Shown here in pieces: positions 10,991-19,305 of a stretch of 64,000 nucleotides of DNA. The stretch is from Pavona decussata. Its lineage: Eukaryota. Made by a program: the position numbers and the translations under genes. Location of the stretch: positions 372,001 to 436,000 of the forward strand of contig CDRNST010000122.1 of NCBI GenBank assembly GCA_977016875.1, read 5' to 3'. Position 1 is the first letter of the stretch; the number at the start of each line of letters is the position of its first letter. A model generated the notes under the pieces. The model had not been told where the DNA came from. It ran no database searches and saw nothing but the letters and a program-made list of their open reading frames with translations.

Positions 10991-13934
10991 TTGCAGATGA
11001 TTTTGGGTGCATGGAGGTGAGCTGATGGACGTGACTTGCTTGAGCTTTTACCCTTAAGAACTGTTCAACATCTCAACTTCTAGCTAGAAAATATGCTCTC
11101 TTGGTAACGATTCCATGTTCATCTTTGCTAGAAAGAAGTCTCCAGTAAAATACACACTGGTAATGTGTCATGATGTTGAATGTTGCCACCAGTAAAGAGT
11201 GAAGAGCAACTTGCACGAAAACAAATTATCTGACCTAAATAATTGATAAATTTACACCCTTCGGCGCCTTAATTTATAAGAACCGGCACGTTCTTCAGCA
11301 CTTAAAAACTGCGATATGACGGCTGCCTTTGTTTTTTATTCTAATTTTTTTTTCGTTGTCCTTTTGATCGAACTTATATCGTTATGCGGATGTTGTTGAG
11401 CCAACCGCAATGAGATTTCCACTTTCTAATCCTCTCCGCCTCTAAATAAACATATCTTTTTCTCCTTGCGATCATCTCCAGAATTTTGTAATCCGGCGAT
11501 TCGTTATTGGATTAGGAAGTTTCGAGACAGGAAACTTCCTTCGGGAGTATTTTTTTCGACCGCCGTTTTTCAACACTAGGCTTTGAGGGTCCTCTTAAAT
11601 AGCTGTTAACTTGACCTTCTTCAGACCGTTTTACTTCAGCGAATTTAGAGACTGAAAATATGGTTACAATTAAAGTGTCAATTGTGAAAATTTAATACAA
11701 GAACCCAATTTCAATTTTCAAATTTTTTAACCTTTTTTATTTTGCCGACGTATGGTATCCTTGTGATACAGCCGACGAAAAAGAAGGCTGCTTTGTTTTC
11801 GTGACTATAAGACGTCTCAACATGCCGCCAAATCTACGGTTTCTGCAATACAAAGCTTTAGGAGCTTTAGTACTCCACCCCTTTGATGGGATGCAAGTCC
11901 GTTGCAGGCCATATCATGTAGTCTGAGACAGGAAGATTTCCGAAGCGCCCCATACTCGCGTGAACAAACCTTCCGTTCTCTTCCCTGAGCAAGACACGGC
12001 TTTGAATCGCCTCTCTGTACCCACTTGTTCAAACCAGGGGTAAGCTAACTAGAGTTCATGCAGATTCTCTGTGTTTTAAATTTTGACTTGGCATATTTCA
12101 AACTGTAAATTGAAACTAATGAAATTATTTCCTTTTTGGTGAAAGAAGTTAGCTTTCTTTTGGCTACTGCAATATGGATGTACAAGTACCAACCTATATA
12201 TGTCGTTGTCCGACCTCGTTTCAAAGGTCAGACACAAAGAAAAGAGAGCCTGGAAAAACCGTTCGTTTTCCACATTCCGAGTGCGAAGACATCTTCGTTG
12301 CTAGGCAGTAAGAAATTACATATTTTGATGTTGCTAGGGAGGAACCCTGCCGAATCTACGTTTTCTACAATACAAAGCTCTAGGAGCATTTGTACTTCAC
12401 CCTTTTGATGGGATGCAAGTCCGTTGCAGGCCATATCATGTGGTCTGAGACAGGAAAGAGTATGCAAGCTTTGTGCCCCACTCTCTCATGAACACACCTT
12501 GACTTCGCATATTTCATACTGTAAATTAAAACTGACGGTCGACACATTATTTACTTTTTAACTGAACGAAAGAAACTAACTTTCAGGTTTATGAATGAAA
12601 CTAGTACGCGGAAACTATTCACACGGTTACCGCAATATGGTACCAACCAAAAACTGCCGTTGTCCAACCTCGTTTCAAAGGTCGGACGCGAGGAAAAGAG
12701 AGCTTGGGAATACCGTTTTCCACGTGCCGAGTGCGAAGACGTACATCGTTGCTAGGCAATAAGAAATTACATATTTTGATGTTGCCAGGAAGGAGCCCTG
12801 AAACTTGTTCAAAGACCGGCTTGGATGTTTGCCTGAGAATATTGGACATCCGTGCGATTTGAAGCTTACATAAAAATGAGTGCCGGTTGATGATTGACAT
12901 TTCACAGCTCCGTGTAAAATAAGCATGAGCAATGACTGTTTCATCTAACCTTTCCTTTTTTTTAAACATCGATGCTCTTTTTGCAGATGATATTGGGAGC
13001 ATGGAGTTCAGCTAATTGACATGACTTGCCTTACCTTTCATTCTTTAATACTCGTCAACGTTTAGACTGAAAAAATACTTTTTGTGTTGGAGTGATGCCA
13101 TGTTCACTTTGCTAAAAAAAAGCCCCTAGCGAAATACACACTGGTAATGTGTCATGGTCGTCATGATGTTGAATGTTGCCACCAGTAAGGAGTGAAGGGC
13201 AACTTGCACGAAAACAAATTATCTGACCTAAATAATTGATGAATTTACACCCTTCGCGCCTTATGATTAGAGATACGCACTGTTTAGCGCTTTTTGGGTA
13301 AACTTGTTATCTGAGTTGGCTCGTTCTTCAGCCGTGAAACCTTGAAGACTGCAGTATGAAGGATGTCATAGTGATATTGCTGTTGCTATTCATCCCAGTG
13401 GCTTCAACCAGTAAGTGTTTTATATTTGCGGTATATTTCCGTTCTCTTTTTGATCGAATTGATGTTGTTATGCGGGCGTTGTCGAGTTAGCTGCAATGAG
13501 ATTACCACTTCTTAATCCGTCATTCTGGTCTCCAAAATCTTGTAATCCGGCAAAAGGTATTCTGTAGACTCTTGAAGCCTGCTAGCAGTTTGTGAGGCCT
13601 AGAACTTTCTTCAGCAGTCAAAGGTTGACTTTTAAATTCTCCTTTTAGAACGTCCCTTACAAGCAAACAGCTGCGTTTCAGACCTAAGCAAGAATTGGGT
13701 CTCCCTCGATATCTCTTTAACTGATATTTTGTGGCCGTTTTATTTAATCCAATTTCAAGACCCTGGAAATATTGTGACAAGTTGGGGCTCAGTTCGTCGA
13801 CTGTGTTAAAAGTGTAAATTTAATGTTGCAACCCAAATTTTCAAACTTTTTTCCCTTGCCGACATATTTTGCTCCCTGTGAAACAGACGAAAAAGAAGGC
13901 TGCAATAGCATGCTTTGTTTCCTGAACAAGACGG
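10991..13934 (+). repeat. Diverged tandem duplication (~2 kb period) of the promoter/exon-1 region of the Tae4-Hint gene, with nested smaller duplications
   Basis: 10991-11817 aligns by eye with 12981-13934, e.g. the shared gcaacttgcacgaaaacaaattatctgacctaaataattgat. Also 11823-11990 ~ 12348-12500 and 12165-12348 ~ 12625-12800. Confidence 0.8.
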
Positions 13935-16900
13935 CACGCACGGTGATGGCCTCGCATTAAACAGCGTCTGCAAGCACGCCAACGATATGAAACAGAAATT
14001 TTGAAGGTCAAAATTTGAGGTCAAAATTTTGAATTTTGGCCATTTTCCACGTAATTGGCAGCAAATTCAGCGGACAGTTACCCGTCTCTTGTTGGAATTC
14101 TCAGCCATGAGTAAGGAATTGCCTTATTTCTAACCCTTTCAGAAAATTTGAGAAGATTACTCTACGCATGCAGATGTTGGCGAATGTAAACCACCGAGAC
14201 CGTAATAAAATAACACCATGTTCAATTTCGGAAACATATATTTTGAGCTATAACGGTAATCAATTTTGCATGAGGAGATATATGGTAAGGCAGCTGGATT
14301 TAACTATCCACCAAAAACAATAGTGTATCTATGAACGGACTATCTTATGGTGTTTGCCCGCGAAAATTTGCTGTATGTTCAGTTAAAACAATATTAGCCC
14401 GAGGAAGGCAAGCTTCACTAAGAACATCAAATTTCCAAGGGAAAATATCAGACCGATAGACCCGAGAATTTGAAATCAACCTTTTCGTTAGTGAATTGAA
14501 AAAAAAAAAAAAAACAGTTTTGTGGACATGTTCTCTCCAAAAATACTGAGCCAATAGTGTATCTCCGTTGAGTGGATGAACACGTGATTAATTTTGACCA
14601 ATGAGAATCGGAGAACATTTAGCGGCGAAATGTAACATCAAAGCTACAAGGCAGTAGTGGGACTGTGGGTACGATAGGGCGAGTGAGTTTGAGAGGAAAA
14701 AAAAAGTGGCTCAACATATGGCAAGGTAGAGCTTATTTGTGAAACATTTTGCTTCAAAACTTACTTGTAGTTTTGTTTTGAACTGACAGGCGCGATTTTA
14801 AGTTGAGTCAAATGCAAAACGTCCGCGTGCCAAATGTACCAAATTCTCACAATCTATACCATCTTTAGACCCAAAAGTGACATACAACGAGTGGGGCGCG
14901 CACGGTAGGTTATTTGCAAATGAGAGGTCAAACCAAGAATGCAATACAAGAGAGAAAAAGTATAGTTCTCAGCAGGATTAGCTTCAAAAGATTGTCTTCA
15001 AGAATTCTTGATTAAAAGAAGATTCCTGTTCGGATGGTGATCCTATAGTTAAAATGGTATACCTGCGGGCTTTTTGTTAGTATGTAGAATTTTTCTGTGT
15101 CTAGTCATTAAAGTTGAGGGCAAAAAACAGGACAATTTTCAAATTAACCACTGTTTCCACTTTTTTTTTTTTTTCAGAGATGCTGCCTTTGTTTCCAAAC
15201 CTTAAAATGTTTTACCCCGGATATGCAAGTTATGGTGGAATGTTCAGCGACCCGCGCCTCATCAAAGAGCTCCACCTCTCCTACCACGCCAGCATAAACA
15301 GCGACACATGCATACTGCGCATGAGCACAGCACTAAATCATAACAGAGGCCACGAAGTGAGAGAATCTTACAACGGAAGCGCAAAAGGCTTTAAAGGCTT
15401 GTATTACTTCTATGAGCGAAAAGCGTTTCTGGATTACCTTAAAGAGGTGTATGGACGACCGCTCACCTCGAACACCACCGAAACTTTCAAATCTCAAGTA
15501 GGAATAATGTTTATTGATGCCACTGTCAGCAAGAACTCAAGCGATGTTTGCAAAGTCTTGCTCTGGAATGGCATGGGCTTTCATCAGGCACGAGGTTTTG
15601 TTCAAGACATTCAGTCTGTGAAAAAGTTTGAGTTATGGCCTACCACAACAGGTATAGTGGAATGTTAGAGTTACCCGTAAAATTGCAGTGAAACTCAAAG
15701 CGGACCCAACCAGTGTAAGGCCCAGAGCTCGCGTTTTCCTTGACCAAGTCGCCGTGGGTAGTTACGTGTGATTTTTTCTGGTCAGGCTGGCCCAGTTGAT
15801 ACAGATGTGTAAAATAATCTGCACTAGGTGCTTTGTTTACCTCTCTTGTCTGTCTTTGTCCGTCCCCGTGCAATGTTGAGGCCCTCAAAAGTGAGGCTTA
15901 GGGGACGTGTAATGATCTCAATGTCAACGATAAAGATTGTTGTTTTGTCGTGAGCCACCTTAAAAGGGCTCATTATCATTAAAGATCAATCGGTTTCCCT
16001 AAATTTTTCTTTGTTTTCTAATTTCCACAACTCGACTACATTTGTCAACCTTCCCTATAAGTATAAGTAAAATCACCAAAATATTTTACAGTGAAACGTT
16101 TGGTTTCTCCTCCATTTAGATGATTGTAAAGTCAATTTAAATATAAAGCAGTCCACCTGTTTTCCATCCAAGTCTAAAGTTGAGTTGAAATCTGGGAAGA
16201 AAATTCCCATGAGTGAGGTCGGCATTGGCGACTTAGTCAAAACATACTCTAAGAAGGGTGAGGTCATGTTCAGTCCCGTGGTTACATTCCTGGATCAAAT
16301 GCCTGATTACAAAGGTTAGTAACGAATTCTTCCACGATTTGCCTTTCATCGANNNNNNNNNNNNNNNNNNNNNNNNNNNNNNNNNNNNNNNNNNNNNNNN
16401 NNNNNNNNNNNNNNNNNNNNNNNNNNNNNNNNNNNNNNNNNNNNNNNNNNNNNNNNNNNNNNNNNNNNNNNNNNNNNNNNNNNNNNNNNNNNNNNNNNNN
16501 NNNNNNNNNNNNNNNNNNNNNNNNNNNNNNNNNNNNNNNNNNNNNNNNNNNNNNNNNNNNNNNNNNNNNNNNNNNNNNNNNNNNNNNNNNNNNNNNNNNN
16601 NNNNNNNNNNNNNNNNNNNNNNNNNNNNNNNNNNNNNNNNNCATTCCCTCCTTGATTGTCTTCCCTTCCCCCTCTCTCGCTTTATTCTTATGATTTCATC
16701 ATCTAACGTGTGCCCTTTCCCTTCCTACCTTCCCTCCAATAAACATATCATTGAAAGCAACCTTTATGAGAACCAACTTTATTTTTGCCTTCAGGTCACT
16801 ATTACACGATTACTACTGCGTGCAACTTTCAAATATCCCTAAGCGAAGCTCATCTTATTTTCAAGACAATTCCAATGCCCCATTTCACTAACTGCTCCGC

Positions 16901-17309
16901 CCATGCGTCTCAAGTCAGACCCGGTGACTTCATTCTGGTCCATACTCGGCGAGGACGCTATCCTGAATTGGTGACATCAGTCTCAATAGCTGAGATGCAG
17001 GGAGCCTTTGCACCTGTCACCGAAGAAGGTACCATGATAGTGGATGATGTTTGGGTGTCGTGTTATGCTGACATCGCGGATCATGATTTAGCTGATACAC
17101 TGATGACACCTTTGAAGAGGTTCTATGGCCTGGCCCCTCATGTGCTGGGGACCGGGGGCAAGTACCTGCATGGGTACATGAAAGGAGCCCTCCGACCCAT
17201 CGGTGTGAGGATCTTTGGCAAAGAGAAGTTTTATCAAAGTCCACAAAGGGAGGTTTTGAGGGAAGAAGAAACGTCCATTGAATCATTTTTCAAGAAGGAT
17301 AACAAGTGA
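13356..17309 (+). CDS. Secreted Tae4-like (T6SS amidase effector family 4, NlpC/P60-type) domain fused to a Hedgehog-type Hint + sterol-recognition region; 412 aa precursor
   Basis: Exons 13356-13410 (MKDVIVILLLLFIPVAST, signal peptide, donor gtaagt), 15178-15651, 16120-16314 and 16795-17309. All introns are GT-AG, phase 1; total 1239 nt = 412 aa + stop. Exon 2 has Tae4-like motifs LPLFPNLKMFYP, SDTCILRMSTALN, YLKEVYGRP, GIMFI, VLLWNG, FELWP. Exons 3-4 have Hint motifs T|CFPSKSKVELKSG..GDLV, TFLD, LSEAHLIF, GAFAPVTEEGTMIVDDVWVSCYA and an SRR-like tail HDLADTLMTPLKRFY..LHGY. Confidence 0.9.
16353..16641. other. Assembly gap (N run) in intron 3 of the Tae4-Hint gene
   Basis: Run of N. Flanking exons join in phase and the Hint sequence is continuous across the junction, so no missing exon is needed. 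Confidence 0.99.
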
Positions 17310-19305
17310 TTGTTATAGGTAGATTGCATTCGAAGCACTAGCCAAAGTTCGATTGTATAGTTAAAAAGAACACACCTTGAAGCTCATGGCATTATTAAAA
17401 ACAATCAGAAGGTCATAACCAAGTGTTATCAAAGTTTGGTCACACGTGCCAGCTGCAGGGAACTAAATGCCATAATTTTAGTTGACGCTATTTATTTTGT
17501 AAGAAGCTAACTTGTCATTTTACGTTGTTCGTTTTGACGATGGTTTAATCGTGACACTAAATGAAAAGCAAAGGGAACTTTGGAATCAGGTTTTTAGGGT
17601 GTCGCGTTGAGGGACAGAGCCTTGTGATAAAGCTTATTTTCACGATATCTCTTTGTATTAAGTGGTCAGTGTTCCCTGAATACGGGCCTAACTGTTGTAT
17701 AGAAGTAACCATGAAGTCTGACGTAGAGAATTACCAAACATAACGATGTTTTCGCAAGCACAACGTTAGTGCAAATCAATAGTCATTGTAACAGCGTACT
17801 GATCTAACGGTCACCTGTCAAAGCAGAGATTCAGCGCGGTCATGTTTCGACCCTGGTGCAGCCTTCAGACCTTGAAACGAACATATTGTTTGGCCTGCAA
17901 CAGGGTAAAAGCTGTGCCACACACTCTGCAAAGCTGAAAACACATCTCATCTGTCACTCCTGCGGAGTTTCGTAAACAAGACACTGCCTTATTTGTCTCG
18001 CTTCTCACAGTTTGCTTGAAACGGGGTTAAGCTAAATGATTGGGATTCAGGTTCATACAGTTTAACGATGTAGTTCATGTAAATTGTTTTTGACAAGTAC
18101 ATTTTGCCCTTTGTACAAACTGTAATTAGCAGTCGAACCTTTGTTAACTGGTTTTTAACAAGAGAAATAGAGAAGGAGAAGGGACCGATATTCACGGACA
18201 GCCTAAAGAACTGCTTACTTACTTACCATCAAAGGTCATGCAGAAGAGCAAAATTATCCTAGTGCTCAGTATTGCAGAAACCGCAGCTCAACTTAAGCAG
18301 TTTTTCGGTGGTGGTAATTTTTACTTGCAGTCTCCCTTGTTATGCATTTGTATAATTTTATTGTGTTTTGATGTCAAATGCCCCTAGCATGTAAAAAAAT
18401 GGCGGATCTTCTCACGGACTGCGAGGTCTGTTCTCGGAAGTTTTAATAACAATTTTTTTAATTAGCTGAAATAAGCCATTGGTTGATTATATGAGCAGCT
18501 ATTACTTACTATATATTAATAATATTAATGTTATCCTGGAACACGTCATGTTTTTTAAGCCGGATAACTTCGGTGTTCGTTTAAGACGACATCGGCATCG
18601 CAGCTTACAGTTGAAACTGAACTGTTGATAACATTGCGTCACTGAAGTCATAAACAATGAGCAGATTTTATTGACGTTTTCAGCGCAGTTGTTAACATTA
18701 AAGATTTGAAGAGAAAGTCTATACAGTAAACTTACTGCAACTAAGTCTGCATTCTTTCAAAGTTTTCTTTTGTGTGTGTGTGTGCAGTGCATCCCCTTTT
18801 TGAACACTTAGAGGGATTCGCGCCACACTACAATCAACTAATCGTTGGATACAAGGAAATGTAAAAAAATCTGAAGTTGTACTTATACCGGTATTTACAT
18901 AGAGTCTAAGCTTGAGATAGTTCCATGAATTGCTTTTACTTTAGGTTTTATTTGATTAAAAGTTCTTGTTAGCTGTCTGCTCGAAAATCATTTATTGACG
19001 TTTGGGAGTAAAATCTTTTAAGTGGCTTTATTGTATTTTGTATATAGTGTTTAATACGAATGGTTCCTTAAAATATCGCTGCATTTAAAAAATTCGCTCA
19101 ATGTTATACTGTATTCCTACACGGTCTCGCTGAAACAACCCCTGGTAAACAAACCGCGAAGTCAACAATATCTAACTTTTTACACGCAAAAAAATAACTC
19201 ATTTTGGACTAATTCTCCTCTTGTCAATTCTTAATCAACGCGACCTAATTTTTTATACAATAAAGAATTGAAAAATTGTCAAATACTTGTGCATTGTTCG
19301 TGGCT

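Follow-up and report, generated by a model that had tools for sequence, protein, structure and literature searches.

The 64,000 bp window of the Pavona decussata assembly that we analysed (GCA_977016875.1, contig CDRNST010000122.1, positions 372,001 to 436,000, forward strand) contains a four-exon gene for a predicted secreted coral protein of 412 residues. The protein comprises a signal peptide, a domain resembling the amidase effector Tae4 of type VI secretion systems (T6SS), and a C-terminal Hog domain, that is, a Hint domain followed by a tail similar to Hedgehog proteins' sterol recognition region (SRR). Judged by its sequence, the gene is the coral orthologue of Nematostella vectensis Hint3 (NvHint3). 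By homology and by analogy with Hedgehog, we consider it likely (probability about 0.7) that the Hog domain of this orthologue releases the Tae4-like domain by autocleavage, and that the adduct left on the released domain is most likely a sterol. The Hog domain probably cuts off a bacterial-type, cell-wall-amidase-like cargo, and perhaps it also tags this cargo with lipid.

The gene is an additional member of a family known since 2008, as the family is listed in the supplement of Bürglin (2008; PMC2362128) as “Y hog” Nv120428 / Acropora millepora expressed sequence tag (EST) DY579185, with “a new upstream motif.” The printed region of the Acropora EST matches the orthologue P0154 by eye. The Hint domain itself is typical, intact and ordinary, and the interest comes mainly from a testable question, the sterol modification of proteins outside Hedgehog.

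Residues and register of the Hint domain

The coding bases upstream of the nucleophile Cys comprise 55 in exon 1, 474 in exon 2 and 38 in exon 3, in total 567 nt (189 codons), which makes the Cys residue 190 of the precursor. This residue (C1 in Hedgehog Hint numbering, TGT at 16158-16160) and Thr189 at position -1 (ACC at 16155-16157) form the scissile pair at 16155-16160. Asp46 (GAT, 16293-16295), within TFLD, is the equivalent of Drosophila D303, the general base of the transfer step. The TXXH block reads Ser69-Glu-Ala-His72 (16842-16853; AGC at 16842-16844 and CAT at 16851-16853), with Ser for Thr, and aligns to T69-P-A-H72 of Drosophila Hh-C (PDB 1AT0). Cys142 (TGT, 17061-17063) lies in the motif SCYA (17058-17069) and is the equivalent of Drosophila C143/C400. 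The roles of C258, D303, T326, H329 and C400 (Drosophila numbering) are established (PMC9163320).

The initial annotation, made from the letters alone, had named Cys190, Asp46, Ser69-x-x-His72, Cys142 in SCYA and the SRR-like tail, and each was found at that place and in that register. Exon 3 aligned without gaps to residues 1-47 of Hh-C (phmmer against 1AT0 in the PDB), with Cys190-Phe191 on C1-F2. In exon 4, LSEAH aligned to VTPAH (68-72) and VSCYA (17055-17069) to ASCYA (141-145) of 1AT0/6TYY, and the phmmer alignment extended as far as the first helix of the human SHH SRR. Alignment to both the Drosophila and the human protein thus bore out the Hedgehog register. With the Pfam Hint profile (PF01079, cut-off 29.7 bits), exon 3 scored 49.4 bits (E = 5.7e-13) and exon 4 scored 81.9 bits (E = 6.6e-23), both far above chance expectation.

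The likeness to the Hedgehog C-domain (Drosophila Hh-C, 1AT0/6TYY; human SHH-C) includes the equivalents of C1, D46, H72 and C143 in near-identical register, plus a helix-loop-helix tail with homology to the SRR. In the coral gene, however, Gly at -1 is replaced by Thr and Thr69 by Ser, and the Hedge (HH_signal) N-terminal domain is absent. A bona fide Hedgehog ligand can be rejected, as the N-terminal exon matches Tae4 and not HH_signal (PF01085). An intein can be rejected as well, because the Hint core ends at SCYA and is followed by the SRR-like tail and a stop codon, with neither a terminal Asn nor a C-extein.

Orthologues and variation at the catalytic positions

An exhaustive search of representative proteins with exon 4 returned 786 matches, seven of them with E < 1e-30. 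The best match, P0001 (407 aa), has both Tae4 and Hint domains and a Pfam Hint score of 151.6 bits. A further match, P0008, is a protein of 751 aa with 12 near-identical repeats of ~63 aa; it matched only query residues 105-150, in the SRR-like part, and this match probably arose as an artefact of composition or repeats.

Full-length orthologues were found from P0001 by word search and cluster look-up. They occur in Acropora millepora (database name “desert hedgehog protein-like”), Montipora capricornis, three Porites species (named “Hint domain-containing” or “indian hedgehog protein-like”), Pocillopora verrucosa and N. vectensis (NvHint3; B6CGL4, ABX89901, LOC5507649; P0213). The “hedgehog-like” names are misnomers, because these orthologues have no Hedge domain. 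The three coding pieces of the Pavona gene are colinear with NvHint3 (34% identity in the cargo, 53% in exon 3 and 48% in exon 4) and with the orthologues of five coral genera. NvHint3 shares the signal peptide, the Tae4-like domain with its conserved Cys, a Hog domain with CFPS and SC[YF]A, and the same tail. It differs in having Leu at -1, Gln46, Thr69 and HKY in the tail; the corresponding coral residues are Thr, Asp, Ser and HGY. Its N-terminus was named a novel motif in 2008, before Tae4 was described.

Across the family (Acropora, Montipora, Porites, Pocillopora, Nematostella and further corals), C1, F2, H72 and SC[YF]A do not vary. Most corals have Thr at position -1, with Ser in Acropora and Leu in Nematostella. 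At position 46, six coral orthologues have Asp, P0001 has His and NvHint3 has Gln; at position 69, corals have Ser and Nematostella has Thr. Within the coral family, position -1 is fixed as Thr or Ser, and position 69 as Ser.

Thr at -1 and Ser69 had been listed in the initial annotation as deviations. They proved to be ordinary Hog variation when we counted residues in the 141 nearest Hog proteins. At -1, just 49 of 105 carry Gly, 12 carry Ser and 8 carry Thr, and at position 69 Ser occurs in 48 of the 141 and Thr in 91. These counts rule out the possibility that either residue is anomalous. The nucleophile Cys is present in 104 of the 107 relatives with a residue at that position, His72 in 140 of 141 and Cys143 in 130 of 141. 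At position 46, 64 relatives have Asp and 58 have His.

The nature of the tail and of the adduct

The 56-aa tail (17070-17237, forward strand) is of the SRR-like, or “adduct recognition region” (ARR), type and is predicted to form a helix-loop-helix, with two helices in a model of an orthologue. When the tails of the family were compared with 25 Hedgehog-type SRRs, hhalign gave a probability of 97.2% (E = 4.6e-11) over 55 columns, and placed the His-Gly-Tyr of the Pavona protein (HGY, 17169-17177) on the HWY motif of the Hedgehog SRR. From this sequence comparison, the tail is clearly homologous to Hedgehog SRRs, from which it differs in having HGY for HWY and a short inter-helix loop. Within the family, the His is invariant, the Tyr nearly so, and the middle residue is G, K or T. 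Compared with human SHH, Pro379, Leu386, His433 and Tyr435 are kept, and Arg381 is replaced by Lys. In vitro cholesterolysis by human SHH requires H433 and Y435, and the W434A variant stays active in vitro (PMC7242414).

No other part of the gene is as constrained as the tail. In exon-wise codon comparisons with two orthologue transcripts (L013 and L014), the ratio of nonsynonymous to synonymous substitution rates (dN/dS) was 0.04-0.07 in the tail, 0.11-0.21 in the Hint parts and 0.45-0.49 in the Tae4-like cargo. Purifying selection on the Hog domain is strong, and strongest in the tail.

For the adduct, a sterol would be the most parsimonious candidate, and is plausible given the homology of the tail. 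For the time being, the neutral term of Bürglin, “adduct recognition region,” is appropriate for the tail.

Several points weigh against sterol transfer, or against the reading as a whole. The tail has no counterpart of Trp434, and several residues of the first helix are lost, with His374 and Phe377 (human SHH numbering) replaced by Asp and Met. The Pfam Hint match in exon 4 covers profile positions 66-179 of 213 and stops there. Gln46 of NvHint3 is unable to serve as general base, which means that the family as a whole does not share sterol transfer as a constant trait. The beta-branched Thr at -1 may, as known from inteins, slow the acyl shift. The evidence on the fold (see below) comes from the orthologue P0151 as a proxy for the window's own protein, and splicing rests on exon-only contigs from sequencing runs whose “RNA?” label is a guess.

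Some of these points would fit a different outcome, in which the Hog domain autocleaves and the thioester is resolved by water or a non-sterol nucleophile, the tail serving as an “adduct recognition region” for targeting or for another lipid. HGY (HKY in Nematostella) for HWY, the loss of His374 and Phe377, Gln46 in NvHint3 and the truncated Pfam match are all in its favor, and Bürglin (2008; PMC2362128) left open what the adduct of non-Hedgehog Hog proteins is. We nevertheless regard this outcome as rather unlikely. Six coral orthologues have Asp46, and the sole exception among corals is His, a substitution that preserves activity in Drosophila Hh-C (PMC9163320). The two tail residues that SHH needs in vitro are retained, and a segment with clear homology to sterol recognition regions is the one that evolves most slowly. 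Autocleavage followed by transfer to a sterol is thus the reading that we prefer.

Evidence that the domain is active

P0151, the closest orthologue, whose Hog domain is 80-86% identical, was modeled with AlphaFold2 and an alignment of 141 sequences. In the P0151 model, the Hint core has a predicted local distance difference test (pLDDT) score >90, and two helices (339-355 and 368-383) follow SCYA. Foldseek superposed the Hint core of this orthologue model on 1AT0 and 6TYY with a template modeling (TM) score of 0.94 at 1.3 Å.

It had been proposed at the outset that the domain is an active sterol ligase rather than a relic. The first part of this claim is well supported by expression, splicing, the invariant C1, H72 and SCYA Cys, the dN/dS values and the predicted Hedgehog-like fold, all of which suggest a domain that is active, and autocleavage is likewise well supported. 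The second part, sterol ligation, goes beyond this evidence and is kept here as the plausible reading set out above.

Could the Hint domain instead be a catalytically dead relic, retained as a structural or binding module in a precursor that stays uncleaved? The residues at -1 and 69 could be taken to point that way, and the cargo has lost its own catalytic His (see below), which would allow the entire protein to be a scaffold without enzymatic function. However, a functional residue is present at every catalytic position and conserved from sea anemone to corals, non-Gly residues at -1 and Ser69 are common among Hog domains, and the fold is intact in the P0151 model. Moreover, a relic would not evolve slowest within its gene, and dN/dS is 0.04-0.21 across the Hog domain. 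The purifying selection and the invariant catalytic sites rule out a relic for practical purposes, and we consider this explanation very improbable.

Gene structure and transcription

By direct reading of the sequence, the gene has four exons on the forward strand and a coding length of 1236 nt (412 codons), and all of its introns are GT..AG and of phase 1. Exon 1 (13356-13410) encodes the start codon and the signal peptide, in 18 codons plus 1 base, and the orthologues share a similar hydrophobic leader. Exon 2 (15178-15651) encodes the Tae4-like cargo domain. Exon 3 (16120-16314) encodes a conserved linker, the scissile Thr189/Cys190 bond and Hint residues 1-52. Exon 4 (16795-17309) encodes Hint residues 53-144, the SRR-like tail and an acidic/basic C-terminus, and ends with a TGA stop codon (17307-17309). 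Intron 3 (16315-16794) contains an assembly gap (16353-16641).

Public runs were aligned to positions 13200-17800. Exon-only contigs were obtained in runs X1, X2 and X10, from three studies. The X1 and X2 contigs have the joints 13410/15178 and 15651/16120, and the joint 16314/16795, which is in frame and skips intron 3, occurs in all three runs. For introns 2 and 3, the X1 and X2 joints were printed as 15649/16118 and 16312/16793 with “cut +2.” The exon 1-2 joint of X10 differs (13401/15181, with 12 other letters in between), and its exon 2-3 joint, printed as 15652/16121, is within 1-2 bases of the X1 and X2 position. In exon 2, the X10 contig has 25 letter differences from the window and a 6-nt in-frame insertion after 15293; X10 may come from a diverged allele, or from a closely allied taxon that bears the same organism label. 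Run X15, which behaves as DNA, covers the introns and is the only run on the flanks of the gap in intron 3. The X1 and X10 contigs extend to 17732 and 17783, respectively, and indicate a 3′ untranslated region at 17310-17783.

The junction at intron 3 is a split Gly codon (DYK-G-HYYT), and seven orthologous proteins align there without insertion. As the RNA joints skip the gap and the orthologues have no insertion at the junction, the reading frame runs on unbroken and the gap conceals no exon. The orthologue transcripts L013 and L014 contain intact intronless coding sequences. We conclude that transcription and splicing follow the gene model exactly, and that the assembly gap lies within an intron. 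An artefact of assembly or annotation, with an exon or frameshift hidden in the gap (whose true length the assembly does not give) between the two Hint exons or with separate Tae4-like and Hog genes misjoined, can be dismissed, given single RNA contigs from three studies that span exons 2, 3 and 4 with exact GT..AG joints, and colinear full-length orthologous proteins and transcripts.

The Tae4-like cargo

Exon 2 matched the Pfam Tae4 profile (PF14113) with 31.6 bits (E = 2e-7), above the cut-off of 27. It is the sole Tae4 match in the 602-Mb assembly, which has about ten Hint loci. The N-terminal domain of the P0151 model matched Salmonella Tae4 (4JUR) in Foldseek. A word search with the Tae4-like exon matched single-exon open reading frame (ORF) calls from related coral assemblies only.

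Compared with Tae4 and domesticated amidase effector 4, Dae4 (Salmonella Tae4, 4J30/4JUR; nvDae4 of Nematostella), the coral cargo retains the catalytic Cys, in DTCILRMS. The position of the catalytic His126 is Lys (CKVLLWNG vs. GHVTLWNG), and the orthologues have Ser, Asn or Gly there, so that the Hint3 family throughout has Lys, Ser, Asn or Gly. Of the Cys-His pair (C44 and H126 of Salmonella Tae4), the Cys is thus kept and the His is not. Amidase activity of the cargo is doubtful, because Lys occupies the His126 position and none of the orthologues has His there. A His ten residues downstream (GFHQ) is conserved in all coral orthologues, and is Phe in Nematostella (GFFQ).

A Tae4 homologue of Nematostella, nvDae4, is a secreted bactericidal peptidoglycan amidase (Margolis et al., 2021; PMC8713801), and that study never mentions Hint. 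It cites nvDae4 as “GI: 5507694” with catalytic Cys63 (PMC8713801); For NvHint3, the locus is LOC5507649 and the Tae4-like Cys is at residue 64. These could be one gene or two, and a word search with the N-terminal domain of NvHint3 gave no match. In the literature searched, coverage of which was incomplete, we found no published link between Tae4 and a eukaryotic Hint domain, and such a link may already be in print. A coral skeletal proteome paper had no hedgehog or Hint entry.

Proposed mechanism and its meaning

Following removal of the signal peptide, in the secretory pathway, Cys190 would attack the carbonyl of Thr189 in an N-to-S acyl shift to form a thioester, probably assisted by Ser258 (S69) and His261 (H72). 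Cys331 (C142) may participate as in Hedgehog, for which a branched-intermediate role is reported (PMC12054796). A hydroxyl nucleophile at the interface of Hint and tail, activated by Asp235 (D46), would then resolve the thioester. This would free the Tae4-like domain (approximately residues 19-189), its Thr189 carrying a lipophilic ester, most likely of a sterol, and the ester adduct could tether the domain to membranes. We infer each of these chemical steps, alongside the observed gene structure, expression, residues, homology and selection and a fold known by proxy.

We tentatively suggest that corals and sea anemones use the Hedgehog-type Hog domain to put a sterol or other lipid on a Tae4-like domain of bacterial origin that would bind or cleave cell walls, giving a membrane-tethered antibacterial or peptidoglycan-sensing protein, although this is a possibility that we hold with less than even confidence. 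Given the bacterial origin of its cargo, the gene may bear on how corals handle the microbes on their surface. If this suggestion of lipid tagging is true, this would be the first animal protein sterol-modified outside Hedgehog, and the second bacterial cell-wall-enzyme fold to serve as Hog cargo, after the Hedge domain itself. Whether animal proteins besides Hedgehog are sterol-modified has been an open question since non-Hedgehog Hog proteins were described. The gene offers a clean test case, being single copy, conserved from sea anemone to reef corals and equipped with a complete catalytic set, with a tail that evolves several-fold slower than the cargo and keeps exactly the two HWY residues that SHH needs in vitro.

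Other Hog proteins and loci

Nematode Warthog, Groundhog and Quahog and choanoflagellate Hoglet resemble the coral protein in that a Hog domain with an “ARR” tail is fused to a secreted non-Hedge cargo, and differ from it in the cargo domains (PMC2362128). In the trees of Bürglin, cnidarian Hog domains are closer to Hedgehog than to those of nematodes (PMC2362128). Cargos among the nearest Hog relatives were Hedge (17), AIG1 (5), LDLa (5), astacin (2), trypsin (2), Tae4 (2) and multicopper oxidase (1). Those of P0023 and other close relatives include astacin (in the snail Gigantopelta aegis), trypsin, an AIG1 GTPase, LDL-receptor class A repeats and multicopper oxidase. The variety of cargos suggests that Hog is a portable module for release and tagging.

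Other Hog genes occur in the same genome. Two tandem paralogues (L004 and L006; G000:C50, 333-345 kb) have Leu at -1, His46, Ser69 and SWY for HWY, so non-Gly residues at -1 and Ser69 are found in other Hog genes of this genome as well. Four further Hog copies (L007-L010; G000:C294, 1.67-1.82 Mb) lie on one contig, each as a single open frame of 327-362 aa. In these four, a long Glu/Lys-rich, coiled-coil-like stretch precedes the Hog domain, which has a GGCF or GGCY junction, His46, SCYF, and PGW for HWY.

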